Made by a program: the position numbers and the translations under genes
Assembly (NCBI RefSeq): GCF_004010195.1
Contig: NC_057725.1
Coordinates: 32,620,786-32,684,785 of the forward strand
DNA: 64,000 bases
Source: Chiloscyllium plagiosum
Lineage: Eukaryota
Direction of reading: 5' to 3'
Notes under the pieces: generated by a model
Told to the model about the DNA's origin: nothing
Databases searched by the model: none
Seen by the model: only the letters and a program-made list of their open reading frames with translations
Part shown: in pieces, positions 29,345-53,878 of the stretch
How the letters are laid out: each line of letters opens with the position of its first letter
Numbering within the stretch: position 1 is the stretch's first letter

Positions 29345-29652
29345 CTAAACCTGGAGAACGTACGTCTTCTCTACAATATCATTGGTTTTTGGATGCCGAA
29401 CTTCACAAGTGTATTCTGTTCTGCCTTCAACTACGTCAATTGGTAGCCTTGTAACTGTAGAGTAAAGTCCCTTCTCATCGATTTTGGGTATTTCAGTGTT
29501 TTTCTCATCCTTGTATTCTGTCCATCCCTTGCTCCAAATAACCAGTATATCCATGGGACAAAAATGCTCAATCTTGCAGCAAAGAATAGCTTTTTTTCCC
29601 TTTTTGGGATGAGGAGGTTGACACTCTATTTCTGATACTTCAGGAGTCATAG
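29345..29652 (-). CDS. Last coding exon: post-TM C1 domain 6 and stop codon
   Basis: Acceptor catttctcgtag|CT; [20 protein letters not shown], ends YVLQV-TAG. Confidence 0.87.
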
Positions 29653-32600
29653 CTACGAGAAATGCAGAAACAAAATGTAAGTTCTCAAAGATACCAACTG
29701 TAATCGGAGACAATTTAAATAAATTTATATTTAGGTTTCAAAGGCTTAAATGTTTTTTTCAGTAACTGCTCAAGTTAAGTGGTTATATTAAGTTCCAAAA
29801 AGTAATATAATGTGTTTACTATCAAAGTATTTAGAAAAGCTAGATCAAACTTGTACTTAGTAATTTCCACTGATCTGATAAAGCAAATGTTTCTCTCTTC
29901 AACCAACAGCCAATGTTATAATATTAACAACAGTGAGGGTGTTGCTGCTCACTGTTACACATAAAAATCAACAATTTCTTATGCCCACCCTTGTCTAATT
30001 AAACAGTGAAATCTGGAAAATACTGGTACCCCTCCACAGACTGCACTGGTGCAATCTCCGCTAATCTGCACATAAATCTGCTAAACTAATTGCCGACCAT
30101 TCTCACTTCCCTTAGGCCATCCTTGCCTTACCTGGATTGGCCCACATGTGACTCCAAACTCGCAGCAGTGTGGTTGACTCTTAATTGCCTTCTGGGCAAT
30201 TTTGGATGGGTAACAGATGCTGGCCTAGTCATCAACACCCACATCCAATGAATGAATAAAAAAAATTTGAACATGTCATCATTTTAATCAGGAGTCACTG
30301 AATTGGAATAATACACTAAGTGGTAATCACCACTCAACCTCCTAGCTGACATTAATAATTTTACAAGTTTGGAGTTTCATTTTCTCAAAATAAAATTAAT
30401 AGTGTAAATTACATTTTTAAAAGCATAGTTTTCCATCTTCACATATTTTATGTTAATCCTAGGTTTCTGCCTGAACCTTCATTTGTTTCTTGTATGATTT
30501 ATGTGAATTACATTTCCTTTTTTAAAAAGCTGGTGCTCTGCTGTCTGCATGCGCTGGTGATAATTCTTCAATCTGATCAGTTGAACAGCCTCCCTGTTAG
30601 TTGGCTGGCTCACAGATGCCATCAATTCCCTGTAGCCATTACCCATTTCTAACAAAATGCTGGAAGAAAAGTGATAATCCCTCAAAGCTTAAACATCAGA
30701 GCACAAGATCCACTCACCTTGGAGGGGAAGGTGAATATGTCGTGTAAATTTATCACCTTTGTCTTTGTCTTTATACTGAAGGAATAATTTTCTTTCAAAG
30801 TCTTCTGCAGTCACTAAAAATTTCAGACACGCATCTATCTTGTAGGCTTTGTCAGAGTTAAGTATAGGCTTTGTATTTGTGACTCCTTTTTTAATTAATT
30901 GATATTCTTTATACCAGTCCACTGTAACATTCCGATGGGAAATTCCAGAAACTGAACAAAACACTGATAGGTGCTGTCCATATGAAGGGTTCTCTGGCTC
31001 CATCCTGAACACTGAAATTTTGGGTGAGCCTATTAACAGAGAGAAAATGACACATTTAAAAGATCCACAAAGCCAAATTAAGTCACTCCTACCTGTCAAT
31101 AGGTTTTCTTTATTTTAATTTTTCAAATTATGGATACTGCTGACAAGGCTATCATTTGTTATTCACCTCTTTTAACCCTTAACTCATGATAAGCTGCACC
31201 ACGTAGGTTTCTAATGTGTTGTTAAGTAAGGAATTTAGGATTTTATCCAGTTGTAATGAAGGAATGGCTTTGAATATCTAAAGCAGGGTGATAGCTGACT
31301 GCAGTAAAAGAAGCGACAGTGGCTGTCTACGTACCCTCTTGTCATATCCTTCTACGTGGTGGGGATCACAGGGTTGGAAAGTTAGTTGAAGAGGCCTTGG
31401 CAACTTGTCACAGTGCTTCCTGTACATATACACATCATAACCAAGTACACCACTGATGAACCAGTTAACCAGTTAACAGCTGGATAGGGTGCCAGTCAAC
31501 TAGCATATCTTAGCTTAGTGTTAAGATGCTTCAGTTTTGCTACAGCATCACCAATACAGCCATGTGGACGGTATTCAACCACACAATGCTGACAGATACC
31601 TTCTAGGTGGTGAAGAAGCTTTGGGAAATCACTTGAGTAATCAACAGAACGTCCAGCCTTTGATCTGCTCCATTGGCTATGACATTTATGTGGCTGATCC
31701 TGTGTAGTTTTTGACCACTAGTGATTCCCTGATATTGATGGCATGGATTCAATGATTTGATTTGTTTTGATTTATTATTGTCACATGTACCAAGATATAG
31801 TACTGTATTTTGTGCTAAACAAACAAATCACACCTTACATTAGTAATCAGCGTAATTGAACAGAATGCAGAATATAGTGTTACAGCTACAGAGAATGTGC
31901 AGAGAAAGATCAACTTTGAGAGGTCTGTTGATTTATCTGATAACAGTAGGATACTCACTGTTCTTAAATCAGTTGGAATGTATTTTCAAACTTTTGTATC
32001 TTCTGCCCTATGGAAGGGAGTGGAAGAGAGTATAACCAGAGTGGGAAGGGTGTTTGATTATGTTGGCTGCTTTCCCGAGATAGCCGCACATGTAGTTGGA
32101 GTCAATGGAAGGAAAGCTAGTTTTCATGATGGACTGGGCTGCATTCACAACTTTCTAATTTTTATAGTCTTGGCACAGCAGTTGCCATACCAAGCTATGA
32201 TTCATCTGGATAGGATGCTTTCTATGGTGCATCTATAAAAATTGATAAGAGTCATTGTGGGCATGGTAAATTTCTTAGCCTTCTGAGGAAGTACAGGACA
32301 GGCATTGATGTGTTTTCTTGACTGTAGCGGCGACATGGTTGGCCAAGCAGATTGTTAGTGATATTTACTCCAAGGAACGTGACCCTCTTGACCACGTCCA
32401 TCTCAGCATCATTGAGAGGGGCATATCCTCCACTCCACTTCCTGAAGTTGAAGACCAGTTCTTTCATTTTGCTGATATTGAGGGAGAGATTGTTATCTTT
32501 ACACCATGTTCAAGTTCCTGTACTCTGTCTTGTTGTTTGAGATCCGATCCACTAGAGTAGTGTTATCAGCAAATTTGGAAGCGGAGTTAGAGCTGAATTT

Positions 32601-35600
32601 GGCAATGCAGCCACGAGGGTAGAAGGTATATAGTGAGGGGCTGAGAATGCAGCCTTGCGGGACATCGATATTGAGGATCATCATGGCGGAGGTGTTGTCG
32701 CCTATCCTTACTGATTGCGGTCTGTGGGTCAGGAAGTTGAGGATCCAGTCACAGAGCAGTTGTAGTGTCTTAGACCTCAGAGTTTGGAGAGGAGTTTTGT
32801 TGGAGTTATTGACTTTACCTCCAACTTCAACACATAAATAGTAGTCTGACATAGGTGTCCTTGTTACCTAAATATTCCAGGGATAAGTGTAGGGCTATGG
32901 AGATGGTCTCCACTGCAGACCTATTGTAACAGTAGACAAATTGTAGCGGATCAAGGTAATCTGGGAGGCTGGAGTTGATGTGTGTGGTAACTAACCTCTC
33001 AAAGTACTTCATAATGATGGATATCAGAGTGACTGGATGGTAGTCATAAGGCATTCTGCCTGATTTGTCTTTGGCATCAGGAAGATAGAGGACTTCTTGA
33101 GGCAGGTGGGAACCTTGTATCGTACTAAGGAGAGGGTAAAGGTTTCTGCAAAAATACTCCCTCCTGTTGGTCTGCACAGGATCGAGTGCTTGGCAGAGGG
33201 GTCCATCCGAGTAAGTTACTTTCTGTGGGTTCATCCTCAAGGAGGCTGATCTGAAGCCTAAGGCAGTGACTGTGGGCACATGTACACCAAATGTGAAGCA
33301 GTAAAAAGTAGATTAGATTAGATTAGATTACTTACAGTGTGGAAACAGGCCCTTCAGCCCAACAAGTCCACAACGACCCGCCGAAGCGCAACCCACCCAG
33401 ACCCATTCCCCTACGCCTAACGCCAAGGGCAATTTAACACGGCCAATTCACCTAACCTGCACATTTTTGGACTGTGGGAGGAAACCGGAGCACTCGGAGG
33501 AAACTCACGCAGACACGGGGAGAATGTGCAAACTCCACACAGTCAGTCGCTGAGGCGGGAACTGAACCCAGGTCTCTGGCGCTGTGAGGCAGCAGTGCTA
33601 ACCACTGTGCCACCGTGCCGCCCACGACATTGATTATCTGTTGTATGATTAGGATACTTAGAATCACAAAATCACTAGTGTGGAAGCAAGTCATTAAGTC
33701 CATACTGACTCTCCAAACAGCAGCCCACTCAGACCCACTCTCCTATTCTATCCCTGTAACCTTGCATTCTTCTGGCTAATCCACCTAGCTGCACATCCTT
33801 GGACACAATGGGCAATTTAGCATAGCCAATCTATTAAACTTACAGATCTTTGGACTGTGGGAGGAAACTGGAGCATCCACACAGACATGGGGAGAATATG
33901 CAAACTCCACACAGTTGCCATCGGTTGGAATCGAACCCGGGTCCCTGGTCCTGTGAGGCAGCAGTGCTAACCACTGAGCCATCATACCATCCATTTCACA
34001 ATATCATTAATCAAAAAAAAATTATTTGTGACAGATTCAGTTATTTTTATTCAGAACAAAGAAAGGGAAAGAAATGCATAATGGCACAGTTAAAATGTTT
34101 TTGCATATCAAATACAATTCAATTAACCTTTTCATAAGCAAGTTCCAATGGATTAGAAAACACCTTTGTTTATAAAGGGAAGGAAACATCTGTTGATATC
34201 TGTTACTGGGAATATGTAAGAATTTATTATAAAGGATGTGATATTTAAAATGTATAATATGATCAAGCAGAGTCCACATGGTTTCCTAAAGGGGAAAATC
34301 ATATCTGACATAGAATTACTGGATGAGTAACAAGCAGGAGAGAAAAAAGGGAAGTAATTGGTGTAATATATTTTTACTTTCAGAAGTTGTTTAATAATGT
34401 ACCACACCTACTGAATAAGGTTCAAGAAATAGCATGTTAGCATGGATAAAAGATTGGCTAACTAACAGAAGACAGAGTTGGATAAGAAGACATTTTCAGA
34501 ATGGCAACCTCTAACAGGGACCACAATTGATTAAAATGTATATGAATGTATATTAATGACTTGGATGAGGAAAATGTTTGTACCAAAGCCAACCTGGCAG
34601 ATCACACAAAAACAGGTGGGAAGGCAAGTGGTGAGGAAAAGACTCTGCAGGGGGATATAGACAGTTAAGCAAGTGGATACTAACTTGGTGGCTAGAATAT
34701 AATATAGGGAGATAAGAGGTTAGGCAGGAATGCAGGAGGGAGGAATAGAGGTGTTGAATATTATTTCAATGGAGAAAGACTGCAGAACATTACATAACAG
34801 AGGGATTAGCGAGTCCTCGTCCATGAATCACAAAAAGTTACCATCCAAGTTTGGGGGCAATACAGAAGGCAAATTGAATGTTTGCCTTTATTTCAAAGGG
34901 AATGGAATATGAAATATGAAGATTTTGCTAAAACTACACAGCATAAGTCTGACTGCTGCTGGAATACTGTGAACAGTTTTGTGCCCCTTATCTATAGAAA
35001 GATGTACTTGCATTAGAAGCAATCCAAAGAAGATTCACTATGCTGATATCCGGTATGGAGGGTCTATATTGAGAAGAGATGGAATAAATTGTATCTGCAA
35101 TTGTTAAAATATAGGATAATGAGAGGAGACGTTATTGAAACATTGAAGACTTGCATGGGACTTGATAGGGCAGATGCTGAAAGGCTATTTCACCTTGTGG
35201 GAGAGTCCAGCACCAAAGGGCATTGTCTCCAAACAAGAGATTGCAATTTAAACAGAGATGAGGAGGAATTTTGTCTGAGGGTAGTGAATTGGTGAAATTC
35301 TTTACCAGAAAGGGCTATTGAGACTTGATCATTAAGTATATTCAAGATGGAGTTAGACAGATTTTTAATCGGCAAGGAATTAAGGGTTATAGGGAAAACA
35401 CAGGAAAGTGGAGTTGTGAATTATCCAATCGATCTGATTCAATGATACAGCAGATACAATGGGCTGAATGGCCCATTTCTTCTTATGGTCTTATTTCATT
35501 TAATCAAATAGAATACTTTTATCTCACCTTTAAGACATAGCTGGAAACATTTCTTAATAGGTTTGGTTGAAGATTTTGAATGGCAAACTTCGATCCTATA

Positions 35601-38600
35601 TTCAACTTGATGATCATCTGTACTCGGAGTCAAAGTTACTGTGGTGACTTTGCTGTGCAGACCATCTTTACAGGAATTTTGCTCCACAATTTTCTCATAT
35701 TTGACGTTATTGTTAATTCTCACTTCGTTTCTGAACCATTCAACTTGAATATCCTCTGGATAATAGTCACTTATATTACAGGTTAAAATCAACTCCTTCC
35801 CTACTTCAGGGTTGGCAGAATTGCTTGTAATTTCAGATACTTGAGGATGGGATACTGAAATCAAGAGAAACATTAAGAAATACATTTTACTGGCTTTCAT
35901 TTCAGACCTCAGTACCAAAAATTATATAACAAACTATTTTGAACTTACTCAATTGCTGTATTTGGAAAACAACAAATATGCAGGCTGCTAATACTAATTA
36001 TTACATGTACATGCAAAAAAACTTCATATTTTATGTTAACTCAATTCTCTTGGCTAGTTTGTTGTGATAAAACCCCACAAAAATATTTCCTTCCCAAATA
36101 AAAGTCACATTTTAGCACCAGAACGGCTCAGCTTATAAAGAAACAATGTTCTAAAAGAGTATAAACTGAACTATCCCGAGAATAAATCACCAGAATACTG
36201 GCACCTCACCTGGAACTGGATTATACCAACACCCAACATTATACTTGGTTGCTATTCCAAAATGCTGTAGTTGAGTTTTACTTAATTTCAAACAATGGCT
36301 GTAGATACAATATAATGATTTTACTACTAATACATTCAGAACAGTCATCATTGAGCAAAAAAAAAGTGCTTGTCCATACTAAAATAGCATAAAATTTTTA
36401 AAAATCAAGATTTTTGTGCCTGGTCAAGCATTATTTCTTGAACATTACTTTGGGAAAAAAATGTACTTGGGCATCACTGGCCAGGCCAGCACTTCTTGCC
36501 CCTCTCTCAATTGCTCAAGAAGATAGTGGCGAGCTGCCTTCCTGAATCACTGCTTTCATTCTGCTGTACATGGTTCGACATCATCATTGATACTGTTGAG
36601 AAATTAGGCAGTGCACTTCTCCCTACCATTTCTGTGATGCCAGATCTACCGTTAGTTTGGCAATGTAACTAATCTTTCTTACACAATTTTGTCCCGTCAG
36701 CCCTTCTCTTTACTGAATTATTTTACATGCAGCTCTTCAATGCTTAAAATTTATTAAGGAGTGATATAGAGGACGTAATATCACAAAAATACACCACTAA
36801 CTAAATACACCAAAATGTTATTTCATTTTGATGACAATGATCTGATTTTAGGATAAGGTGAATAATGTAGCAATCAGTGTAACTTGTGTGTTAGCTGAAA
36901 TCCTCTCTTAATAACAGTTTTAACTGTGAAATGATGTTACAAAAATATTTACATAGTTACCCATTCTATATCACTAAAATGCATTTAAATTCCCATAACA
37001 TTATTCTGCAAACTAAAAACAGCTGACTGCTAAATTCAAGCATCCTGGCCAGGGAACAAGATTAATTTCAGTGAATACAGTGAAACCGATGTAGTTGATT
37101 TGTAAATAAAACAAATATTGCAGAAAGGATTTTAAATAAGAATAAACATACCTAAATGTTCAGGAATATATTCTGCAAATCTTGGATACATAAGGCTCTT
37201 GTGATCGACCTGGCATTTATATTTACACTGTAGGTCTGATAAGGTTGGAGTAATTATAAATGAACTGGTAACTTCGTGCAATCCATTCTCTGAATTTTGA
37301 ACAGTTTCAGGTGTTTGTGATTCCACTACATCATCATTTTTCAACCAATGGACAGTAATACTTTCAGGATAAAAGGAATGCACTTTGCAGGTTAGAGTCA
37401 ACGTTTCTCCAATTACAGGGTTCACAGGGTCACTTAAGATGGCATCAAGAGATGGGAAAGCTGGAAAATAAAATATTAGAACATTACCTCATTTATACAT
37501 TCACATATAGTTTCCCTGTTATGAAGAACTCTCATTTTCAGTGATCTCACTGTTCTACTTTAATGAATAACAGGATCTTTAACATCCATATAAAACCTGA
37601 TACGGAACCTCAGTTTAACATCCCAGCCAAAGATGATTCTCCAGCAGTGTCATACTCATTCCTTACTGAATAGAAAGGTCAGTCTGGAATGTGGCATGAA
37701 TCAAACACCTCAGCTACCAAGTGAACCAAGATATTGGAAGAGGAAATGACAAATACGTGTACATATTGGCATATGTAGAAAAAGGTTTCAAGGGCGATTA
37801 TTGATCATGCCATAAAAGTATCTTTAGGCAATTCACAATCTGGAGTCCAGCAGTAGGGGGTGGTATTGATGTTACAATAGATTACAGATCAGAATAGGAA
37901 AGGAAGAAAAAGAAGTCCCAACACTTTTTTCAACTAATTATTGTAATTTAGGAAATACAACAAGAGATTGATGACTGCAAGTTCTCACAAATATCAGTGC
38001 AATAATGCTTCAAACATACTTTTTATGTGATGTAGGTAAAACAAAACAAATCAGAACAAAATGAAAAAGAAATGGCATTGTGAAATCAAATGTAGAAAAC
38101 ACCACAGAAATAAACAAGAGGCCCCGTAGCAGCTGTTAAAAGAGAAGAGACAGTATTGTTTTAGTTATGGACTGTCAAGCCAAATGGGGCAGGTGTTTCC
38201 ACAACATCATTTTCTCCATTGAATCTGTGTCTCACTAACATTCTAAGATACAGAATCAATTACACACAGGATACCCCGGTGAGGATGCCATCTCTGAGAC
38301 AAAGAGCTTTCTTTATACAACAATCCTTCATTTTCTTACTATAACTACTCTCTACTAACAAAGGTAGCTTATAATGCATGGCTAGTTTTCCAGTAATTCA
38401 ATGGCTTTTGTGTGTGTTCGTAAGTTCATAAGATACAGGAGCAGAATTAGGCAATTTGGCCCATTGAGTCTACTCTGCTATTCCATCATTGCTGATATGC
38501 TTCTCATCTCTATTTTCCTGTTGTCTCTCTATAACCCTTCAACCCATTATCAATTAAAAATCTGTCTAACTCCTCCTTAAATTTACTCACTGTCCCAGCA

Positions 38601-41600
38601 CCCACCACACTTTGGGGTAGCAAATACCACAGATTCACAACCCTTTGGGAGAAGTAGTTTCTCCTCAACTCTGTTTACATTTGCTACCCCTTATCCTACA
38701 ACTATGCCCTCTCATCCAAGAATGCTCACAAGAAGAAAAAGCATCTGATCCACATCTATTTTATCTGTACCTTTCATCATCTTGAATACCTCAATTTGAT
38801 TTCTCTTTTTGTGTGTGAAGAAAGAAGATGCCTATGACTACAGAACTTGAATCAAAAAGTTAATCGAATGTGTTTGGTGGTCAGGAACTGATTCCAATTG
38901 CCACTCAGTTTGTCTCTCATTATCCACACTCAGAGCAGATTTGGTAGAGTGCTGTCCACTGTAATTAAGAGAGGGTGAAGCAAGAAAACTCTGGCTATTT
39001 GGTTGAATACATCCAGGCAGTGGCACAATACCAGCTGCACAAATATTAGCTTCTGTTTCTTCACAAATATTAGCTTCTATGATATTCTTCATATCAATGT
39101 GATACATACAAACATGAATTAGGAGCAGTAGACTAGTCAGCTTCACGAGACTGCTCAGCCACTTCTTTAGTTCACAGCTAAATCTGTTGTGGCCACAAGT
39201 CTACTTTTCCCCATCTCCTCACATCCTTTTTACTCCCTTGTTAGTCAAAACTCTGCCTGTCTAACCGTGCCATAAAAAATATTCAAGGACCCTGCCTCCA
39301 TTGTGGAAGAAAACTCCATATTCACGACCTCAAGAGAAAGAGGACAGAAGATGTCCCATCTTAAGTGAGACAAATAAATGAAAAGAAAATTGTGTTTTTG
39401 TGTTACCTGTTACGTCCAGTTGAACCTGTTCCTCTGCTGGACTGCTCAAGCCAATGTGTTCAACTTTACAGAAGTACTGACTTTTGTCTTCTTCTTGGAT
39501 TGTTGCATTAAAAAGCAGCATGCTGTAGACACTGCGAGTGTGGTCAGAATAATTAAATCCAGTCATATAATGGGAATATTTATCTGGATACATATTTTCT
39601 TCCTTTGCATTGTCTAAAAGCAGCAAAGGGATTTTCTCTCCACCCATTTCTTTATACCATGTGATCTTTAGAGGATGTGGCTTGAAAAAATTTATCGGAC
39701 AGGTTAGCGTCACAGAACTGTCATGCTGTACATTTGGTGGCTTAATTATGTGAGCCAACTTAGGAGGAACTGAAGAGGGAAAAAAACACATCAGTTTCAG
39801 TCATAGAGAACTTAAGATAAACATTATTCCTTCCTTTTTAAAAAAAAACATAAATCTTTCACCAAAACAAATGCAATCATAAACACTGTTGTGTCTGTTT
39901 ATCTTAATCCTTTCTAAAGTTTTCCAATTATTCAAGTAGTCTGCTCTCCATTCTAACCCCTGCTGGAGTTCTTGTTTGTCTTCAGTTGTACTAATTTGCA
40001 GTCATGCCAAAAATTCCATTCCAAATTCCAGAAACGTAAAACGTAACAGAAAGGTAAAGTCACCCAGGGCACAGTTAGGAACATAGGAACAGCAGGAAGC
40101 AATTCAGCCCCATAAGCTTACTCTGTTATCCAATTAAATTATGGCTCATTTTGAATCTTAATGCTATCTATTTCCTACAAGACCTATTATACCTCAAAAG
40201 TACTTTATCAGTTATAAAGTGCCTTACGTTCCTTAGATTATAGAGCTCATGATTTGGAGATGCCGGTGTTGGACTGGGGTGTACAAAGTTAAAAATCACA
40301 CAACACTAGGTTATAGTCCAACAGGTTTAATTGGAAGCACACTAGCTTTCGGAGCGTCGCTCCTTCATCAGGTGGTAGTGGGCCATCAGGCCACTACCAC
40401 CTGATGAAAGAGCGATGCTCCGAAAGCTAGTGTGCTTCCAATTAAACCTGTTGGACTATAACCTGGTGTTGTGTGATTTTTAACTTAGATTATAGAAGTT
40501 GCTTTGTAAAAATGCAAGTGTTTCTTTCAATACCCTTGCCCAGCTAAAAAAAATCAAACTCAATTTTGAATTGACCCAACCTCTCACAAACAAGGAACAA
40601 AAGTAGATAAGTCAGGCCTTTGAGTTTGCTCAGCCATTCAGTAAGATTATGGCTGACCCGATTTAAAACGTATCCCTGATCATTTTTCATCCCCAATGTA
40701 ATCAAGTATATAACTATCTCTACATGAAAAATATTTGAAGATTTCGTAACCACTGCCTTTTGAGGAAGGTAATTCCAAAGACTCTCAACCCTCAGAAGGG
40801 AATAAGAAGTTTCCTTGTATCTGTTTTAAGTGTGCAACCCCTTAATTTTAAACTATGACCCCTTGTTCAAGATTCTCCCACAAGAGCAAACATCTTTCTG
40901 ACATCCACCTGGTCAGGTTCCCTCAGAATCTCATAAGTTTCAATTAAGTCATTTCTGATTTTTCAATATCCTAGAGAATAGCCATTCCCATAAGGCAATC
41001 TGCTTACTCCAGGTAATCATCTAGTAATCCTTCCATGTACTGCTTCAACTATCAATATCCTTTCATGAGCACAGTGACCAGTACTGCATACATTACTCCA
41101 GAGAGCAGGACCTGTATAACTGAAGTAATACTTCAAACTCTTACATTTAATCCCCTCATAATAAAACATAACATTCTATTAGCTTTGCTGATTACTTGCT
41201 GTGCCTACATACTAATATTCTGTGATTCATGCACCTCAGAGCTCTGAACCTTTCACCATTTAAATATGCCAAAATGGACAATATCACACTTTCCCACATT
41301 TTACTCCATTTGCCAGATCTTTACCCAATCATATAACCTACTTATATCTCTTTGTAGACTTAGATCCTCTTCAGAGCTCACTTTCCTACATATCCTGGTG
41401 TCACCATCAATTTTAGTCATTATACCTTCAATCTCTTCATCAAAACAATTTATATAAATTGTAAAGAGTTAAAACTCCAGCACCTAGCTCGTTGTACACT
41501 ACTTGTGACATCCTGCTGGCCTAAAAAAGACCTATTCATTCCTACTCTCAGCTTCCTGAAAGCCATGTAATCTTCTATCCAAGTTAATGTTACCTCTCTA

Positions 41601-44600
41601 CATCATGACGTCTTATTTTCCACAATAGCCTTTGATTTTTTTTACCTTACCAAATGCCTTTTGTAAATCTCAATACAATATATCAACTGGTTCCCTTTTC
41701 TCTAAAGCGCAAGATACTTCCTCAAAAAAAATTCAATAAATTAGTTAAACATTATTTCCCTTTGACAAAATCATGTTGGCTCTGCATGATTATCCAAGTG
41801 ACTTTGTAACATCTTCCTTATGACAGATATTAAGCTAACTGAGCTGTAGTTTCATAGTTACTGCCGCTCTCCCTCCTTTTTTGAATAAAGGAGTTATATT
41901 GGTGGTTTTCTAATCTGAAGGAATCGTCCCTGAATCCAATATATTTTCAAAATTAAAACCAATGCATCAACCATCTCAAAATCCCTACAGTGTAGAAGCA
42001 GCCCACTATCGAGTTCACACCAACCCTCCGAACAGCATCCCACTCTGATCCACCCCATACTCTATTCCTGTATGCCTGCAATTCCTGTGGCTAATTCACC
42101 TCGCCTATACAACCCTGGATGCTACATGACAATTTAGGATGGCCAATTTAGCATAACCTGCATATCTTTAGACTGTAGGAGGAAACCAGAGCACCCGGAG
42201 GAAACCCACACAGACACAGAGAGAATGTGCAAACTCCACACAGTCATCCAAGGCAAGAATCAAAACAAGGTCCCTGGCACTGTGAGGCAGCAGGACTAAC
42301 CACCGAGCCACTATGCAACCCGAAATACTTTACTTTTAAAACCCTTAGGATGAAATCAATCAGAACCTGGGAACTTGTCAAGTCGCAGTTCCAAAAACTT
42401 ACTCAGTACTATCTTCTGGTATCTGAAATTTTCTGGAGTTCCTCTCTCCTTTTCAATTCCTTATTTACAGCTATTTCCAGAATCTTACTCTGTGATGATC
42501 AGCGATCAAAATACCCTGTTCAATTGCCTACCATCTCTTTATCCTCCGTTCCTAATTCCCCAGATGCATTTGCTATAGGACTAAAACTTATTTTGTTAAC
42601 TCTTTTTTTAAATATCTAAAAACAAAATCCTGTTTGTAATATTGGCTAGCTTTCTCTCATGCTAATTCTTCCCTCTGTAGTAAACATTTAGTAATTTATT
42701 GTTTTGAATAATCTTTCCAAACTGCTAGCTATCTTTGCAAAATTATAGGCCTTTGCTTCGAGTTTGATTTGATTTATTAATGTCACACTGTTTCGTATTT
42801 ATCTAGATAAATTCTATGCTACATACAAACAGCAGGACAATACACTATATTCTGCTTTCTGTTCTGATGAATACAATAGCCACAGAGAAGGTGCAGAGAA
42901 AGATCAACTCTAATATATGAGGAAGTCCGTTCACAAGTCTGATAACAAAGGGGAAGACGCTGTTCTTGAATCTGTTGGTACATGTTTTAAACTTTTGTAT
43001 CCTCTGCCTGATGGAAGAGGATGGAAGAGGTCTTTGATTATGTTAGCCGCTTTCCCAAGGCATTGACCTTTTTTGGTATCCATGGAAGGAAGATTTATCC
43101 CACGGAATTTTCCTTATTTGTTGAAAAGTACATATTGTTCAATCAGTATGTTATGGCATCAGTCAGACAGCTGGCTATTCTAAACCTGGACTATCCCCGT
43201 AAATGTTTACCATTGCACCTCAATGACCCTTAATGTAAATTATCAGTTCATTTTTGCTTTCATAGGCTCATAATTGCCCTCGTTTAAACTCTCCCTCAAA
43301 CTGAACACTAAACTCAATCATGTTCTGGCCACTGCTATCCAGTGGCACTTTCACTATGAGATCAATAGTTAATCCTAACCCATTGGTCAAAACCAGGTCT
43401 AGCATAGCCTGCAGTCTTAATGATGTCATAACATACCGATCGAAGAAATTGTCTCCAAAACATTAAGTGAATTCCTCCTTTAGACTATATTTTCTTATTT
43501 GATTTTTCAAGGTTGGTAAAAATCCCCTAGGATAATTCCTGTACTGTTTTGACAACATGCCTTTGGTTCTTCCTTGAAATCCTGTCCTACTGTGTGCTTA
43601 CTGTTAATGCACGTGGACACAATACCAACAAGTGACTTTGTACCTTTATCATTCCTCATCTCTACCCAGACCGTTTCTATATCCTGGTTTTCTGAATTTA
43701 GGTCACCTATTTCTATTGTGCTAGCATCATTTGTAACAGAGCCACTCCTTTCCTAGCTTCCTGTTCTTCCCAAACATCACGTGCCTTCAATATTCAACTG
43801 CCAATCTCGAGGAGTTACATTGGAAAACAGCCAATGTGAAGGAATCTTCATTGAATCCAATGAGTTTTTGAAAATTAAAATCAATGCATCAACCATCTCA
43901 CTACCTACTTTAGTGTTCAGGTCCCAATCTAGGTCATCAATGATCTCTTATGGCCATTAGATTGTACGTATTTATCTGAATTTGTACTACTATTTCATCT
44001 CTTTTGTTTCAAATGCGAACAGCTGTTTTGGGAAAGATGTAGAGAGATTTAAATTCCAGCCCTATTTTGCAAAATTCCAGGATCTCTTTCAGACAAAGGG
44101 ATGAAAGTTACATGCCAGCGATAGGAATACATTACAATATGATAGGATGGAGGAAGTAACAGGACAGAGAGACACAGAGCAACATTCAATTGAATCATTT
44201 ACCATGATGACAGTGGACATTGGAATTATGATCAATTTGAACATTAGGGTCCACACATTCTACCTCACAGAATTGTGTCTTTTGATCAATTCATTTAAAA
44301 AAAAAACTTACTTCCATCAACATGGAGTTTGATCTTTTTATAGATAGCTTCACTGTTGGATGGATGCATCACTTTACATGTGATTTCTGCTTCATTGTCC
44401 ACAAATATGTCAGGATGAATCTCGAGAATGCTGGAAATGCTGAAAGTTCCATCATTATTTTTCTGGATACTTCCTGCCCTGACTTTCCAAACATCATCAC
44501 CAGTTTCATTCCTTTTCTCAACCTTTTCCATTTTCCTGTCCTTGTTCAAAGCAAAGCTGAATATGTTGCTGTCTTGCCATTCATCAATCAACTTCATTTC

Positions 44601-47600
44601 AGCATCATTCAACCTCTTCAAATACCAGGCAATTGTAATAACACAAGGTTGAAATCCAGAAACTTGGCAAATAAGTTCTGCAGGTTCTTGATGTATAATT
44701 TGCACAGGTTTTTGAATATCTGACATGTTTGGTGCAACTAGGAATAAAAAAAAAGTTGCATTTTTCGAGGTGATCTTTTGCACTTCCTGAAAATTCTTAC
44801 CAACTTGCCTCGATTTATTGTTATTTGTTTTAATTCTCATGGTTAAGGTTCAGCAAGATTTGCCAAAAAACATCTTAAAAATTACAATACCGGTAGATCT
44901 GTTATGGAAATACTCAGTCAGAATGGGGACTTTTGAAATTAGTAAACATTAAGTAAACTGTGGTGTACACTAACACAGGGATGAATTGCATGCACACTTA
45001 GATTCACATAATGTGGTATGGGCGGCACGGTGGCTCAGTGGTTAGCACTGCTACCTCACAGCACCAGGGTCGATTCCAGCCTCGGATGACTGTCTGTGTG
45101 GAGTTTGCACATTCTCCCCGTGTCTGTGTGGATTTGCTCCGGTTTCCTCCCACAGTCCAAAGATGTGCAGTTCAGGTGAATTGGCCATGTTAAATTGCCC
45201 ATAGTGTTAGGTGCATTAATCAGAGGGAAATGGGTCTGGGTGGGTTACTCCTCGGAGGGTCGGTGTGGAGTTGTTGGGCCGAAGTGCTTGTTTCCACACC
45301 GTAGGGAATCTAATCTAATCAATGTTTGAATTAACTGGCTATTGGAGCGTGAAGTGGTTTTTGGAAAGTGAGCAATAGCATTTTTATGAAGAACACCAAG
45401 TGCATGCAAAACATCTTCTATGGTGATTTAAGAGTTTGCAGAAAGGTGGTGATACAGTAAACAGGTGGCCATAAAAATAAATAGGCAAAGTTCAAAATAG
45501 AATTTTAAGAAAAAGCAATTAAATGTTTTCTGAAAACATATGATTTCAACAGAGTCAAGGGCAACAATGATGCAGTTCAAAATAATATTTAAAGGTTTAC
45601 AGATGAGGAGGATAAAAGAGCAACAGGAAAGAGAACGAGAGAAGGAAATTAAATAATGGCACAGAAAAGAAACTGTAAAATAAAACACAGTTATTTGTTT
45701 TTAAAAATAAGAAAGCAAGACATGACAAAAATAATTATATATCTGCACTCCAAGCATGCAGAATGGTTTCACCATGTCAAAGGATCTGCAAATCAATTTG
45801 AAATTGTGCTTTCTATTTCTGGTAATAGAGCAAATGTGGACCACACTCTGGAACATAACTCACGTTACCAGAACAGCTCAGCAGCTATAGAGACCATTCA
45901 CAACAGCAGAAAAACAGCTATATTTTGGAATTAATTATTAAAGAGCTGAAAGCAAGATCCCCACTTTCTCTTTTAAAAAGCAGAATGATTGGTACTTTTG
46001 AGGTTTCTTTCCCCCTTTAAATGTTCAAGAATCCATTGACTGTAAACTCCAGAATGTATTGGGCAATTGTTATCAGCAACACCATACAAGATCAAAGATC
46101 AAAATATAGTAAAACAGTCCAAAGGTTAGGGTAGAGTAACAGAAGTACTCTACAGCAGCAAAGAAGTAGTTGGGTGAGGAGTTAATAAAGGTAAAACAAA
46201 TATACCAAGCAGAGCACTTCTGAAACTGTCTGATTTACAGAGCATTTCGTTTTTAGCTTGCATTTTGATTAAGCACTCTTTGCTGGCAGAGTAATCACTG
46301 CTATTTAACAACAACACATAATCTGAAAACAAAAAAAAATGAAACTATAGTAAGTTTGAGATTCATTGGCTAAATCTAGGGCTTTGCTGCAAAAGCACTT
46401 TCAATAGGTTTCCTCCCAACCCATAAACAACCTGTAATTTACTCCAGGTTTATCTCCTAAAGTGTCTGAAGTAGCACACAGAACTCAGAATGTGGCTTTA
46501 CCTTTATAATAAAATCGCATATAGAAATAAGTTCCTAGTCCAAGCACAAGAATAGAAGTAATGATGCTCCCAATGATGCTTCCGATTATTGAAGCTTTGG
46601 ACAAATGAATTTCAGCTTCTGCAAAAGAGAAGTTACATATTTCTTACACTCAACTGCTTTGATAGTCCCACTTGTGTAATACTGTACAATAAAGTATAAT
46701 AGTGAAATACTTAGCACAGTCCTGGGCAAACCAATTAATAAGGACAAATAATAGGTACTAGTTTTTACACTTGTACATGTCATTGCTTTTGATCCAGTTG
46801 TATTACTTGGAAAATAGGACATTTGTAATGGAAGTGCATTTACACAAGAGTCAATGTGGGGATCAATGTTACTCATAACTTGCATTTATTTAATGTCACT
46901 GGAACAAAATCTTGGTCTGCCCTTCCTAAAGGCTTTGTAGGTCCATGTACAACAAATGGACCGCAAGGGTTCCAGAAGGCAGCTGATCATAATTTTAAGG
47001 GCAACCAGGGATGGGCAATTTAAACAAAAACTGATACTTCAGGCTGAGGAATAAGAAACTTCATATCAAAATTTACAAATACTTAAGAAAAAGAGCAAGT
47101 TTAGTTGACACTATAAACAAAAGAACGGAACAGAACATTGTATCAGAAAACCTGCAGGGCAGATAGTTAAGTGACATCAAGAAATATAATGAAGTCAATA
47201 GAAAAATAAACAGAAGTGTCACCTGCAGTTTATTTTTTAAAGAGAGTAAAGGTATGAAGGAATTCAGGAAAACAGGTGAACACATCAATGACAGCAGCAA
47301 GGGAACAAAGCATTAAATGTGTCAGGTAAAATCATGGGATTGATTTTAGACTTGGTACATTTGTTAAATGTGTACAGAAACCTGGACAGGCTGTAGGTAG
47401 AGTGAATAGTTCTGGTAGCCTGGTATAAAAAAAAACATAGAAAGTGTAAAATATGTTCACAAGCATGGTATCAGAACTGAGACCACATCGATTGAAAAAA
47501 ATTTAACTGGTTGGGGCCTCCATTTTCAAAACAACCGGATCCTTACAATTGATCTTAAAGAGGTCTTTACAATTATAAGTGGTTTGGACAAGGTAGAAAT

Positions 47601-50600: not shown

Positions 50601-53600
50601 TTGAATAGGTGTCTAACTCAATAGATGGAACACAAGTAACAAAGACTGTCTCCAGTTGCATTCCTGCAAGCCAAACTGCACGCAAGTCAGAACACAATGC
50701 ACGTCAACTGAAAGCAGCTGTTTGTTATAGGAAGTGTTCATATGTCAGGTTTTTAAAATTATAATCAAGTGTCAGATGGCACTTCTAAATATGAGCTTTC
50801 TAAGTCAGGGAATACCTGTACTTAAAAATGAACATTTGAAAAACATTGACATATGCAAAAATTCAGTTATTACTCGCAATACACATGTAATCTAATTCAG
50901 TCACATTTATATAGAAGTTAATCGAGTATTATATCAAGTTGAAATGCTTTGTAAAAATAAATTTTAAGAACACAAGTTAAAATTTCACTAGCCTGCCCGT
51001 ATCAAACAAATCCATTCCAAAAGTGTCATCTTTGATTGTGTCCCCAAGAAATTATAACTGCAGTTCTTTGGTTAATATTAAAATGCTTTTCAATATGAAT
51101 TTAACCAAAATGCTATAGACTTAGTATTTAATAAAGAAAAGCTAAATTTATTGCAACTCACCTTTCAAAGTCACCAAAGCTTCCACCTGGTGTGGTTTTG
51201 TAAAAGACTTGTGAGAGACACGGCACGTGAAAGTGCTGCCAATATCTTCTACTCCAGGCTGTAATCTAACTTCAGTGGTTATGTTGCATGTTCCATCAGG
51301 GTTTTTGACTGGCGGGGCAGTGCAAATATCAGTCAACACGTTTGGCTTTCCTTCTGCTGGCGTTGTCTGCAGCCATTCCGTATTGCTTTCGCAAGGATAA
51401 TACCCACTTAACTGACAACCCAAGGCCATCTCTCCACCTGTTCCAACTTCCACAACTTTTTCTGAAGTCACGATTACTGTAGGCCGGGCTACCAAAATAA
51501 GGAGGTATGTTAGTCTCAACAATAACTGCATGTGTACTTCAAAAGTAATGCATTGATTGGATCTATGCAAGGTAAATAAATAGCAGAGCCATTATTAAAT
51601 AAATATATCTCAATTAACAATCATCAGTAAAGAGAACAGTGCCAGAAAATTGGAGTCGAGAATGTGGTGCTGGAAAAGCACAGGAGGTCAGGCAGTAGCC
51701 AAGGAGCAGAAGAATCGATGTTTCAGGCTTGTGCGCTTCATCAGGAAGGGCTTATGCCCAAAATATGGATTCTCCTGCTCCTCAGATTTTGCCTGACCTG
51801 CTGTGCTTTTCCAGCACCACACTGTCGACTCTACTCCAGCATCTGCAGTCCTCACTTTCTCCCAGAGAACTGGAGGACAATTAATATGATTTTCATTTTA
51901 GAAAGGAAGTTGCATAGGTGACTGAGTAGATAATAGAATAGAACACATAAATATAGGGGTTAGGACAGACAAATGGTGGGAAGTGACATTCCTCAAAGAT
52001 TGGTGCTGGGATCATTGTTGTTTATGATTTAAATTAGCAATTTGTAGTTCTGGTTCCAGAATATAATTTTGAAATTAAAAAAAAAACACAGTGCAAACAA
52101 CAGAAAATGAAGGACCTGTCTAAAAAATATGATGTTAATGAACTTGCACCCAAATTAACACATTGGAAATGAATTCAGATGAGCATGAAATTGCATTTTA
52201 ATAAGAACATAGAGCCCTGATATTGGCGAGATAAAGTCAAAGTGGGATAGTGGAGAAAGAAAGTAATCAAGACAACAAGACCACAGAATATAATTTTGAA
52301 ATTTAAAAAAAACACAGTGCAAACAACAGAAAATGAAGGACATGTCTAAAAAATATGATGTTAATGAACTTGCACCCAAATTAACACATTGGAAATGGAT
52401 TCAGATGAGCATGAAATTGCATTTTAATAAGAACATAGAGCCCTGATATTGGCGAGATAAAGTCAAAGTGGGATAGTGGAGAAAGAAAGTAATCAAGACA
52501 ACAAGACCAAATCTCAAGCACTGAGATGCATTTCTAGAAATTTTGAATTGTAAAAGTATTTAATTTCCATATTAATCTGACATGATCTAATTTCAAGTAA
52601 TGTGTCCATTTCTGGTTTCCACATTATAAAAACAGATTTGTTCACAAGGATAATACTGCAACTGAGAAGTTATAACCACTAGGAAAGACCTAACAAACCT
52701 TTGTTCTCCCCTAGAAATGTGAAGGCTGAGTGTGATGTGATAAGGGTCAACATAACAAAATGTTGCACGTGGTATTGTTCAAGGTCATCATTCAGATGAG
52801 ACAATAAACCAATCCAAGTCAATGGGTTATTTCAAAGACATGCAATGGGACTTAGGTACTGTATGGCTTGTTGAAAAATTAAGAAAACTTGTTATTAATT
52901 CTAACCATTCTACTAGCTGTGGTGTGTCAGAAGGAACAGATAATCCTGGCATGCAAGTGAAAGTGAAGAAAAATTTCTCAAAGCCCCTTCACCTCTGCTA
53001 GGATGAAGCTGCTAAAATGCTTTTCAAACTTTAATTTTAATGCTATATTCTTAATCACAGATTGTATTGTTATCTTCACTGAAATACTTTATTTCCCCAA
53101 AACTCAAGTACTTTATTGAATCTGCTACTTTTATTTCATTTGGTAAATGCCAATTTACAGGGCATCATGCAAATAAACTTGCAATACATGATTGACAATT
53201 GACAGTGCAGATAGCAACTTTTAACTATATACATTTTAAATATATTAAACTGATAGCATTGTACAGGCATCCCCCGCTATCAGAAAATAAAGCATTCCCA
53301 GGAAACCTTTCATAAGCCAAAAATGGCAAAAAGATGCATGATTTATATGGGAAACATTTTGCTGTTTTTTGTAAAAGCGAAAATCCTCTTTGGATTCGCA
53401 AAAAACAGGTACTAGTGTAGGTCATTTGTAAAAGTGAAGTGGTGTAAAGCAAATATTTGAAAAGCAGACGATACCTGTATTGTATTGGAATGTAGAATGA
53501 CTTACAACAAACAAATCTTCTTACCTAAAACCTCAAGTGTTACCGTCTTAGCGGCTTTATCATTTGGTGGAATATAAATTTCACATTGGTACTGTCCAGC

Positions 53601-53878
53601 ATGTTTATTAACAACATCTTTGAGCAACAGGGACATGTTTCCACGTATAATGGAGCTGGTCAGTAGCTCAGCTTCTTTCCATTTCTCAGTTATTATGCCA
53701 GAAGTGTAGACAAATGCATTTGATTTTTTGGTGTCACTAGTGAAAGACCATAAAATGCCCAAGTTCTGTGGAGTCAGTTCGGACCCAGTGAATTCAGCAA
53801 TTTCACAATTCAGAAGACCATTTTCATTATACATCACTTCAACGAAACTTGGACTGTCTTTTAACTTCAACTTGCTTT
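29345..53878 (-). CDS. Multi-exon B7-H6/NCR3LG1-like IgSF membrane protein: V-C1-TM-(C1)x6, ~947 aa excluding the unlocated leader exon. Exons 53525-53878, 51162-51488, 46502-46618, 44312-44737, 39407-39769, 37152-37460, 35528-35854, 30718-31029, 29345-29652
   Basis: Nine open exons, each with a polypyrimidine-AG acceptor, joined through GT donors in phase 1 into one frame ending at TAG 29345-29347. The V and first C1 recall human B7-H6 motifs (GxxSLxL, AGxYxCE, TVxLEV, SGxYP, KNxDGTxNxT, ED-G-xxxCxVxH); this comparison is from memory, not a database search. Confidence 0.85.
30718..31029 (-). CDS. Exon: post-TM C1-like domain 5 (degenerate, no F-strand Cys)
   Basis: Acceptor tctctctgttaatag|GC, donor G|gtgag; [14 protein letters not shown] strand reads KLFLQYKD. 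Confidence 0.85.
31755..33280 (-). mobile_element. Rex1/Babar-type LINE, degenerate
   Basis: [57 protein letters not shown]; (tcaaa)n-like tail; another 3' end at ~42760-43065. Confidence 0.8.
33310..33625 (-). mobile_element. HE1-type SINE
   Basis: (agatt)n tail and full head gggcggcacggtggcacagtggttagc on the minus strand. Confidence 0.88.
33660..33990 (-). mobile_element. HE1-type SINE
   Basis: Same head and core as the adjacent copy. Confidence 0.8.
34140..35495 (+). mobile_element. Degenerate CR1, ending ~30 nt from an exon donor
   Basis: RGDVIET remnant; tail tcttatggtcttat. Confidence 0.7.
35528..35854 (-). CDS. Exon: post-TM C1 domain 4 (F-strand Cys replaced)
   Basis: Acceptor cttgatttcag|TA, donor G|gtgag; [21 protein letters not shown] in place of YxCxVxH. 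Confidence 0.87.
37152..37460 (-). CDS. Exon: post-TM C1 domain 3
   Basis: Acceptor tattttccag|CT, donor G|gtatg; [20 protein letters not shown]. Confidence 0.88.
38420..38810 (-). mobile_element. CR1 3' end
   Basis: cataagatacaggagcagaattaggc tail. Confidence 0.65.
39407..39769 (-). CDS. Exon: post-TM C1 domain 2
   Basis: Acceptor tttccctcttcag|TT, donor G|gtaac; [21 protein letters not shown]. Confidence 0.88.
40246..40485. repeat. Near-perfect fold-back (~100-bp arms) made of Penelope-like terminal sequence
   Basis: aagttaaaaatcacacaac...ccttcatcaggtggtagtg is mirrored by cactaccacctgatgaa...gttgtgtgatttttaactt. Confidence 0.85.
40570..41985 (-). mobile_element. Degenerate CR1
   Basis: Reverse 3' tail and RT remnants (accttaccaaatgcctt). 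Confidence 0.6.
41985..42320 (-). mobile_element. HE1-type SINE
   Basis: gtgcaaactccacacag core and head. Confidence 0.8.
44312..44737 (-). CDS. Exon: post-TM C1 domain 1 with a long internal insertion
   Basis: Acceptor tttttattcctag|TT, donor A|gtaagt; [28 protein letters not shown]. Confidence 0.88.
45020..45320 (+). mobile_element. HE1-type SINE
   Basis: Complete head, core and (aatct)n tail. Confidence 0.88.
46206..46322 (-). CDS. Candidate extra juxtamembrane exon ([39 protein letters not shown]), or an alternative terminal exon running to the stop at 46150
   Basis: Strong acceptor (ttttttttgttttcag|AT) 180 nt downstream of the TM donor, in phase 1 and open; the donor G|gtatat is weak. 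Confidence 0.35.
46502..46618 (-). CDS. Exon: transmembrane segment [39 protein letters not shown]
   Basis: Acceptor cttctcttttgcag|AA, donor G|gtaaag; 117 nt, phase 1-1, no stop; ~23 uncharged residues followed by aromatic and basic residues (YFYMRFYYK). Absent from the ORF track. Confidence 0.85.
47873..48170 (+). mobile_element. HE1-type SINE
   Basis: Complete head, core and (aatct)n tail. Confidence 0.85.
48245..49530 (-). mobile_element. CR1 RT/3' fragment
   Basis: [27 protein letters not shown]. Confidence 0.88.
49755..50600. mobile_element. Penelope-like element (second family) with multiple inversions
   Basis: [28 protein letters not shown]...[11 protein letters not shown] on the minus strand, with LEAWHS...LDPIY repeated on the plus strand; [15 protein letters not shown]. 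Confidence 0.8.
51162..51488 (-). CDS. Exon: extracellular Ig C1 domain (ARPTV...[10 protein letters not shown]...W...[11 protein letters not shown]...FTCRVSH...VTLK)
   Basis: Acceptor ttattttggtag|CC, donor G|gtgag; CxxSGYYP and FxCxVxH C1 signatures. Confidence 0.9.
51640..51862. repeat. Short fold-back of a Penelope-like terminus
   Basis: gtgctggaaaagcacagg...cttcatcagg / ...ctgtgcttttccagcaccacac; a similar unit lies at 57540-57775. Confidence 0.7.
52057..52508 (+). repeat. Direct tandem duplication, ~227-bp unit x2
   Basis: 52057-52282 and 52284-52508 are nearly identical. Confidence 0.9.
53264..53477. mobile_element. Tigger/pogo-like MITE
   Basis: TA-flanked imperfect TIRs CAGGCATCCCCCGCT / AGCAGACGATACCTG. 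Confidence 0.55.
53525..53878 (-). CDS. Exon: Ig V-type domain ([11 protein letters not shown]...LLNCEIAEF...LGILWSF...[11 protein letters not shown]...AGQYQCEIY...TVTLEVL)
   Basis: Acceptor ttttaattttcag|AA, donor G|gtaag; B-strand Cys, C-strand Trp, AGxYxC motif; G strand included in the exon, so it is a germline-joined V. Confidence 0.9.

Follow-up and report, generated by a model that had tools for sequence, protein, structure and literature searches.

A shark gene with a B7-H6-like ectodomain, one internal transmembrane segment and a predicted cytosolic array of six C1-set domains

B7-H6 (NCR3LG1), a clinically studied NK ligand, combines a V-set plus C1-set ectodomain with one transmembrane (TM) segment, and the human protein has a short, non-Ig cytoplasmic tail. 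SIRPs (V-C1-C1-TM) have short signaling tails (ITIM) or a charged TM and carry no Ig domains past the TM. Butyrophilins, with B7-related V-C ectodomains and one TM, have a folded cytosolic B30.2 domain that passes information across the membrane. Strings of Ig-fold domains act as rods and docking sites in the reducing cytosol in titin, obscurin, and filamin; those domains are I-set or filamin-type and belong to proteins without a signal peptide. The C1-set, the module of Ig, TCR, and MHC kin, is to our knowledge so far known only outside the cell. UrIg2 is described as having a VJ-type V domain, a split leader, 9 to 11 C domains, and a TM at the C-terminal end, which places its whole array outside the cell (PMC12227049). 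Here, we describe a gene whose V-C1-TM-C1x6 layout is explained by no described immune receptor design, and of which no published account was found in the literature covered.

The window (the whole stretch of 64,000 nt that we analyzed, from Chiloscyllium plagiosum) contains a minus-strand gene of nine exons: one V, one C1 (C1a), one TM, and six further C1 exons (C2 to C7), all with open frames. Their translations match P0193, a 973-aa "uncharacterized protein" of Chiloscyllium punctatum, colinearly at 92.1 to 99.1% identity, so that the layout is not due to chance. The features are listed in order of transcription, with identities given relative to P0193.

53525..53878, minus strand: V-set Ig exon, 354 nt, phase 1-1; Pfam V-set E 4.4e-08; 98.3%, from residue 28
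51162..51488, minus strand: C1a, first C1-set exon, membrane-proximal in the ectodomain, 327 nt, phase 1-1; Pfam C1-set E 4.6e-07; 99.1%
46502..46618, minus strand: connecting-peptide and TM exon, 117 nt, phase 1-1, symmetric; 92.1%, residues 255 onward
44312..44737, minus strand: C2, first post-TM C1-set exon, 426 nt; Pfam C1-set E 7.5e-10, in two stretches; 96.5%
39407..39769, minus strand: C3, Ig exon, 363 nt; Pfam C1-set E 1.7e-07, V-set E 1.6e-06; 97.5%
37152..37460, minus strand: C4, typical C1-set exon, 309 nt; Pfam C1-set E 5.5e-14; 97.1%
35528..35854, minus strand: C5, C1-set exon without the canonical F-strand Cys, 327 nt; Pfam C1-set E 4.5e-12
30718..31029, minus strand: C6, C1-set exon without a conserved Cys pair, 312 nt; Pfam C1-set E 9.8e-11; 96.1%
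29345..29652, minus strand: C7, last C1-set exon; Pfam C1-set E 6.3e-10; in-frame TAG, the protein ending directly past the G strand
29091..29169, minus strand: two ATTAAA polyadenylation-like hexamers, 176 and 249 nt past the stop; motif scan, consensus match only

All nine exons are phase 1 in and out, and each is bounded by a pyrimidine-rich AG acceptor and a GT donor. The first-pass annotation had proposed nine phase-1 exons in one intact frame; this proved correct, with canonical splice sites at the coordinates it gave, and the two junctions that it singled out, 51162->46618 and 46502->44737, coincide exactly with exon ends. Seven exons score 30.5 to 52.7 bits against Pfam C1-set (PF07654), all above the curated cut-off of 21 bits, and an HMM of these seven, scanned in six frames over the whole 64,000-nt window, recovered only the same seven (E 1e-33 to 1e-37), the next best match having an E of 1.3. 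C2 carries a long insert predicted to be disordered (P0193 residues 350–374, pLDDT <50); C3 scores between C1-set and V-set, its solved-chain matches being the V and C parts of light chains; and C6 aligns to the Pfam C1-set profile at positions 2 to 66 only. By Kyte-Doolittle hydropathy (19-mer), the TM exon reaches 2.23 and is the sole exon above 1.8, with the other eight at or below 1.43, in agreement with the earlier claim that the only hydrophobic segment follows the second Ig domain and that there is no second TM. Small residues recur in it at a repeated spacing ([10 protein letters not shown]), with MRFYYK next. That six C1-type domains then run to a stop likewise holds: C7 ends in TAG, and the stop is conserved directly past the last domain. 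Inspection by eye of the ~1.4 kb downstream of C7 revealed no TM-like exon, and no leader exon was found upstream of V within the window. We conclude that the window holds all coding exons of an intact gene except the leader and that this gene is the counterpart of the 973-aa C. punctatum protein.

As in B7-H6, the ectodomain has one V-set and one C1-set domain (for the latter, C1-set at E 4.6e-07 ranks ahead of C2-set_2 at E 6.3e-05), and a single TM (exon 46618-46502) follows directly past the C1 domain. B7-H6 is the best non-antibody solved chain for C1a (E 3.9e-11) and matches the V exon over its full length (query residues 16–116, E 0.002); for the V exon, partial matches to JAML (the best, E 1.8e-05) and to CEACAM score better. 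At the level of sequence, these matches support the B7-H6-like ectodomain put forward by the first-pass annotation, with NKp30 binding putative. NCBI labels the relatives from alligator, Bombina, and Discoglossus NCR3LG1, which is a label alone. Past the membrane the two differ, human B7-H6 having its short, non-Ig tail and the window gene six C1-set domains. C4 most resembles the third (C1-set) domain of the SIRP family, its best solved chains being the third domains of SIRP-gamma (E 2.6e-16) and SIRP-alpha (E 5.5e-16), and in the protein atlas the tail lies nearest a cluster of SHPS1 fragments; SIRPs, however, have short tails or a charged TM in place of a post-TM Ig array. In functional terms, butyrophilins are the closest parallel to a B7-like molecule whose tail is structured; the tail domain there is B30.2/SPRY and here is Ig. 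The tail domains are best described by Pfam as C1-set, in contrast to the I-set or filamin-type domains of titin, obscurin, and filamin.

Twelve other named cartilaginous fishes carry orthologues. With one ORF from a Logan contig, they make up the 13 aligned orthologues (890 to 974 aa; a chimaera is among them), which, like P0193, match P0002 at 53 to 70% identity. The C1a-TM-C2 stretch is covered 100% by 11 relatives. Exactly one internal TM, preceded by at least one C1 domain and followed by at least three, is found in 75 of the 150 best library hits. Named members of this one-internal-TM family range from sharks to alligators, some of them labeled NCR3LG1, and database entries for full-length orthologues exist in sharks, rays, a chimaera, bichirs, coelacanth, lungfish, amphibians, and alligators; no teleost, bird, or mammal member appeared among the 30 clusters that could be named. 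In frog relatives, as many as 13 C1 domains come after a V-C1-C1-TM front (P0001). The window gene agrees with the V-C1-TM-C1 array family in domain order, in its one internal TM, in the lack of a terminal TM, and in ending past the last Ig domain. Judged by these sequence features, it is a member of an old vertebrate family of uncharacterized database proteins, of which P0193 and the orthologues are examples, much as the first-pass annotation had guessed.

Purifying selection on the tail, also suggested earlier, is borne out by column conservation over the 13 orthologues, which is 0.65 to 0.75 in the tail domains versus 0.73 in V; the TM exon stands at 0.742, and 7 of its 39 columns do not vary. 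C2, C3, C4, and C7 retain the canonical cysteines of the B and F strands (13/13 in seven columns and 12/13 in one). In C5, the F-strand Cys is missing from the canonical column in all 13 orthologues, and C6 has no conserved canonical Cys pair across them; C5 and C7 hold extra conserved cysteines. Family-wide, both cysteines are kept in 216 of 357 tail domains (60.5%) versus 97.5% of control domains, a figure that largely reflects two domain types without a Cys pair and no general decay. All six tail domains are modeled as confident beta sandwiches (10-residue block mean pLDDT mostly 80–94).

Could predictors have merged a conventional V-C1-TM gene with a separate downstream C1 array, be it another gene or a graveyard of exons? 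In favor of this, the introns are long and filled with repeats, and reading through the TM exon donor adds five codons before a stop, which would allow a short-tailed form. Yet P0198, a continuous 949-aa ORF on a 3,886-nt Logan contig, spans both parts: the TM leads directly into C2, and the frame continues as far as the shared C-terminus. An ORF of this length on such a contig must be spliced RNA, and the join of TM and array is thus present in a relative's RNA. The V-C1-TM-C1x6 order is identical in P0193, the 12 cartilaginous-fish orthologues, and this ORF, in keeping with the single gene proposed earlier, and the same aligned end residue closes 13 of 13 orthologues. In addition, every junction is in phase 1, C2 is not preceded by a start codon with a signal peptide (the ORF into C2 begins hydrophilic), and neither AATAAA nor ATTAAA occurs in the scanned part of the intron past the TM exon. 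We regard two merged genes as very improbable and close to refuted by the continuous ORF and the shared order and C-terminus. The elephant-shark entry V9K7L7 (P0154), presumably derived from cDNA, has the TM, and several of its residues differ from the genome models; exon C2 is present in 16 sequencing runs, none of them on record as RNA. Even less credible is an array of unconstrained pseudo-exons, the relic of a decaying gene. C6, with no Cys pair and a partial Pfam match, and C5, without its canonical F-strand Cys, would fit such decay, but these peculiarities are common to the 13 orthologues including the chimaera and hence are old and maintained. Nine open frames, 96 to 99% identity to the sister-species protein, conservation equal to that of the V domain, and confidently modeled domains also speak against a relic, and for practical purposes the P0193 identity, the orthologue conservation, and the shared C5 and C6 features refute it.

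The side of the membrane on which the tail lies is a closer question. We infer that the six C1 domains are cytosolic from the signal peptide, which is present in orthologues, the single TM, the flanking charge, and the distribution of sequons. In the 75 one-internal-TM proteins, net charge over the 15 residues flanking the TM is –0.47 N-terminally and +2.64 C-terminally, and the C-terminal flank is the more positive one in 65 of them (positive-inside). Sequons exceed the shuffled expectation before the TM (226/129.6 = 1.74) and are near chance after it (321/287.5 = 1.12), versus 250/148.9 = 1.68 in 14 control arrays with a terminal TM, which are truly extracellular. Sequon density is higher before than after the TM in 65 of the 75 proteins, a comparison whose p-value is overstated because the proteins are related. 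Sites kept in at least 10 of 13 orthologues number 2 of 9 before the TM versus 1 of 21 after it; the window gene alone has 2 and 6 sequons, respectively, at about equal density on either side. A lumenal or extracellular tail would arise if the TM exon were an often-skipped cassette, with a secreted V plus seven C1 domains as the main product, or if the TM failed to stop translocation. The 117-nt TM exon is symmetric (phase 1-1, a multiple of three), and the 34-residue TM segment of Bombina RefSeq isoform X1 is precisely what X2 lacks, so that a fully secreted form is possible. The conserved Cys pairs in four of the six tail domains, along with the further conserved cysteines, resemble those of disulfide-bonded lumenal domains and count against the cytosol, as does the moderate hydrophobicity of the TM (just 2.23); 10 of 13 orthologues share the one retained tail sequon, which lies in C3, and non-rearranging multi-C1 molecules outside the cell exist in elasmobranchs, namely UrIg and UrIg2 (PMC12227049). 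Against this, the TM segment is found in P0193, every orthologue model examined, the Logan RNA contig, and V9K7L7, and only 1 of 11 isoform pairs compared differs at the TM. The conservation of the TM exon with positive charge next to it, the near-chance tail sequons, and the lower retention of cysteines than in control domains also argue against a lumenal tail, which we consider unlikely. We place the probability at about 0.6 that the gene encodes a type I membrane protein with a B7-H6-like ectodomain and a cytosolic rod of six C1 domains, its topology and scaffold role being predicted. Of the B7-H6-like receptor with a cytoplasmic C1 array in the first-pass annotation, the gene, the ectodomain, and the single TM are upheld, and the cytosolic placement stays a prediction.

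For the type I protein with a cytosolic tail, we propose that the signal peptide would bring the B7-H6-like V-C1 ectodomain across the ER membrane, that the one hydrophobic helix would halt transfer, and that the remaining ~680 residues, with their six C1-set domains, would stay in the cytosol as a folded rod. The tail may serve as an intracellular oligomerizing or docking scaffold for a ligand read outside by an NKp30-type receptor. We give roughly even odds to a broader model, in which a C1-set rod of six to thirteen domains works in the cytosol on B7-H6-like and SIRP-like receptors and couples NK-type recognition outside to an intracellular partner. The family would then be as old as the jawed vertebrates themselves and would have been kept from chimaeras to crocodilians (unseen in teleosts, birds, and mammals among the 30 nameable clusters), with the symmetric TM exon permitting a switch to a secreted eight-domain form.

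If the tail is cytosolic, the family would be a large and old exception to the rule that places IgSF domains of the C1-set outside the cell or in the lumen, and B7-H6 would trace back to molecules whose inner half was very different. If instead the tail is secreted by exon skipping, the product would be a germline, non-rearranging, antibody-like chain with a membrane/secreted switch in the middle of the gene, which would likewise be unusual. In both cases, dozens of "uncharacterized protein" entries would gain a common description.

Among the sharks' own molecules, UrIg and UrIg2 share with the window gene a germline V followed by a run of C1-set domains in phase-1 exons. The V exon ends in ...[11 protein letters not shown] and lacks a G-x-G, the J motif, whereas the V of UrIg2 is described with a J-like end. 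The TM and cytoplasmic exons of UrIg2 follow all C domains, whereas here the TM follows the first C1 and nothing lies past the last domain. UrIg2 (PDB 9dmx) ranks with the top solved chains for two tail domains, C4 (E 2.3e-11) and C7 (E 6.2e-12), the best chain for C7 being an IgA1 heavy chain (E 1.2e-12).

We placed each boundary of the nine exons on the minus strand, from 53878 to 29345 (in 5′ to 3′ order V, C1a, TM, C2, C3, C4, C5, C6, and C7, with V and C1a making up the ectodomain and the six C1-set domains C2 to C7 the tail). All nine exons have a pyrimidine-rich tract and AG ahead of them and GT behind, all are phase 1 on entry and exit, and the last, C7, carries an in-frame TAG stop at 29347-29345. 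In Pfam, the V exon is a V-set domain and seven exons are C1-set domains, with C6 matching the C1-set profile only over its initial two thirds and the V-set score of C3 nearly equal to its C1-set score. Among the nine, only the TM exon contains a hydrophobic 19-mer (Kyte-Doolittle 2.23 vs ≤1.43 elsewhere):

46618-46502, minus strand: TM exon, 117 nt, encoding 38 residues (letters not shown)

The boundaries, phases, Pfam domains, and single hydrophobic segment thus agree with the first-pass annotation, which had described a B7-H6-like receptor with six C1-type domains behind its only transmembrane segment and whose exon coordinates and junctions were correct. If the donor of the TM exon (46502) were left unused, five more codons (GKATF) would follow before a stop, and the product would be a conventional short-tailed V-C1-TM protein; the scanned part of the intron downstream of the TM exon contains no AATAAA or ATTAAA.

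A motif scan found two copies of ATTAAA 176 and 249 nt downstream of the stop, so that C7 looks like the true last exon, and an HMM trained on the seven C1 exons identified no additional C1 exons on either strand of the window. We rejected a terminal TM downstream of C7: The approximately 1.4 kb read there offered a single acceptor-like site and just 11 hydrophobic codons. All 13 aligned orthologues have a common last residue. As for a leader exon, neither a scan upstream of the V exon for an ATG, hydrophobic stretch, and phase-1 donor nor a tblastn search of the window with the N-terminal 32 residues of P0193 (a 973-aa Chiloscyllium punctatum protein) gave anything convincing. Two runs of Ns are present, 61300-61982 and 27118-27125, and this exon may lie inside or past the larger of them, or past the window end.

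Proteins of this design are already in public databases, without description. Exon C4 gave 1010 matches at E ≤ 0.001 among 1.84 billion representative proteins, the second best being an "uncharacterized protein" of 969 aa from Pristiophorus japonicus (P0002) with the order V-C1-TM-C1x6. Searching with P0002 returned 13 more proteins (P0189-P0201; 890-974 aa, 53-70% identity), 12 of them from named cartilaginous fishes, each again an "uncharacterized protein," and one an ORF from Logan. A homologous-protein search with exon C2 alone, to which we give little weight, found no match inside its length band, and the protein atlas held only generic C1-set and SIRP-fragment clusters. We translated, searched, and compared the window exons individually and used P0193 as the whole-protein stand-in for searches and folding. 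P0193 matches all nine exons colinearly (from V to C7, 98.3, 99.1, 92.1, 96.5, 97.5, 97.1, 97.2, 96.1, and 99.0% identity), and the window therefore holds the same gene; the N-terminus of P0193 is a 27-residue leader that resembles a signal peptide. Across the 13 aligned orthologues, from which the partial P0201 and the window sequence were left out, column conservation was 0.65-0.75 for the six tail domains vs 0.73 for the V domain, with C2 the lowest of the tail (0.645). The reading of the array as a decaying pseudogene relic is rejected on its sister-species identity of 96-99% and a tail conserved equally to the V domain.

Indirect evidence that the ectodomain, TM, and array are joined in a single transcript, at least in relatives, is strong. 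P0198, the Logan protein, is an ORF of 949 aa whose contig measures just 3,886 nt. Since the gene here extends over more than 24 kb, that contig must represent spliced RNA, and P0198 continues from C1a through TM and C2 as far as the shared C-terminus. In an elephant shark protein, V9K7L7 (P0154, UniProt), the TM likewise separates C1 from the array, and several residues are unlike those of genome-derived models; this entry probably derives from cDNA. When residues 200-460 of P0193 were used as query, 11 of the 11 relatives returned span the whole stretch. Exon C2 itself is present in 16 sequencing runs, none of the 16 recorded as RNA. Because the P0198 ORF is continuous across TM and array, we reject the reading of two merged genes.

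To define the family, we annotated the 150 best matches with the C1 HMM and a hydrophobicity scan. Half of these (75) had a single internal TM, preceded by one or more C1 domains and followed by three or more, 14 had a terminal TM only, 34 had no TM at the threshold used, and 27 fell outside these classes. The 30 clusters looked up by name represent sharks, rays, a chimaera, bichirs, coelacanth, lungfish, frogs, salamanders, a caecilian, and alligators, and several of them carry the label "natural cytotoxicity triggering receptor 3 ligand 1"; this sample of 30 includes no teleost, bird, or mammal. One class of frog proteins (P0001, P0004, P0022, P0032, and P0039) has a SIRP-like front (V-C1-C1, with two C1 matches), a TM near residue 330, and 7-13 C1 domains behind it, with P0001, from Dendropsophus, reaching 2158 aa.

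By standard rules, a cleaved signal peptide and one stop-transfer helix with no second hydrophobic segment place the 680-residue tail in the cytosol. We compiled topology statistics on the 75 internal-TM proteins, taking as controls the 14 terminal-TM array ectodomains, which are certainly extracellular. Net charge over the 15 residues on each side of the TM was +2.64 after vs −0.47 before, and 65 of 75 proteins were more positively charged on the C side. N-x-S/T sequons were enriched ahead of the TM (226 observed vs 129.6 expected from shuffling, ratio 1.74), as they were in the control ectodomains (250 vs 148.9, ratio 1.68), and stood at a ratio of 1.12 behind it (321 vs 287.5). Sequon density was greater ahead of the TM in 65 of 75 (medians 1.30 vs 0.58 per 100 residues), a comparison whose significance is overstated because the proteins are kin. 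Both ectodomain sequons are kept, each in 11 of 13 orthologues, while 1 of 21 tail sites is kept in at least 10 of the 13. Judged from these sequences, the tail behaves like protein without selection for glycosylation. We conclude that the gene product is probably a type I membrane protein whose B7-H6-like face is extracellular and whose six C1 domains form a rod inside the cell, a reading to which we assign a probability of roughly 0.6.

The main competing explanation, which we consider unlikely, is that the tail of the principal functional product is lumenal or secreted, either because the TM exon is skipped or because stop-transfer fails. That exon is symmetric and the TM only moderately hydrophobic, and in Bombina bombina, isoform X2 of NCR3LG1 (P0020) lacks exactly the 34-residue TM segment of X1 (P0169); of the 11 isoform pairs compared, however, no other included a model with the TM skipped. 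An alligator isoform X2 was ruled out as a second case, since it differs solely at the N-terminus. The window's own protein has nearly equal sequon densities on the two sides (2 in 225 residues before the TM, 6 in 675 after). C2, C3, C4, and C7 retain the canonical cysteine pair (in 13 of 13 orthologues for seven columns and 12 of 13 for one), and C5 and C7 have additional well-kept cysteines. Conserved pairs of this kind would be expected if the Ig domains were oxidised and lumenal, although cysteines in a buried position may also persist for packing.

Among domains spanning 80 or more HMM positions, both canonical cysteines were present in 216 of 357 tail domains vs 79 of 81 control domains. 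This family-wide drop is largely due to old losses in two domain types, C5-like and C6-like. In C5 (35854-35528) and C6 (31029-30718), the canonical disulfide is absent from 13 of 13 cartilaginous-fish orthologues, and the alignment identifies its loss as old and domain-specific; general decay is ruled out as the cause, the loss being limited to the two types. An odd cysteine count did not discriminate as a marker of a reducing compartment (46.7% of pre-TM and 45.1% of post-TM domains, with controls at 23.5%).

AlphaFold2 modelling of P0193 with a 22-row alignment (mean pLDDT 82.0, pTM 0.41) predicts a confident beta sandwich for each of the six tail domains, even the two that lack a disulfide; at this low pTM the relative positions of the domains are uninformative. 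Low confidence was restricted to the leader, residues 255-275 by the TM, and a long insert in C2 (residues 350-374, pLDDT <50) that is the sole part of the tail modelled as disordered. A helix was modelled at residues 277-289. For the type I protein with a cytosolic rod, the small-residue spacing repeats in the TM, together with the pairing habit of C1 domains, suggest self-association, in which case the rod would gather the ligand into clusters or serve as a docking site for cytosolic partners.

Compared with solved structures, the V exon matches B7-H6 from end to end (E 0.002); its matches to JAML and CEACAM score better but are partial. B7-H6 is also the best non-antibody match of C1a (E 3.9e-11). 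The nearest matches of C4 are the third domains of SIRP-gamma and SIRP-alpha, those of C7 are an IgA heavy chain and UrIg2, and C3 matches light chains in both their V and C parts. The retrieved text of PMC12227049 describes UrIg2 as a non-rearranging shark molecule of VJ plus 9-11 C1 domains with its TM at the end. It is the nearest multi-C1 design described in the texts retrieved, and membership of UrIg/UrIg2 is ruled out because the window gene differs in V type and TM position. In the passages retrieved, B7H6 appears only in passing or in reference lists. Among the full texts searched, none describes a B7-type molecule that carries Ig domains after its TM, though an earlier report may exist.

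The introns and flanks contain fragments of reverse-transcriptase-like ORFs on both strands (32252-33279 and 48666-50526, and in the flanks 551-1126, 13544-14008, and 25260-26815), which by eye are taken to be decayed LINE copies. On the plus strand, a 75-aa ORF at 62377-62604 contains an RNA recognition motif (Pfam RRM_1, E 5.2e-08); it resembles RBPMS, as judged by eye, and may be a retrocopy or belong to a neighbouring gene as one of its exons.
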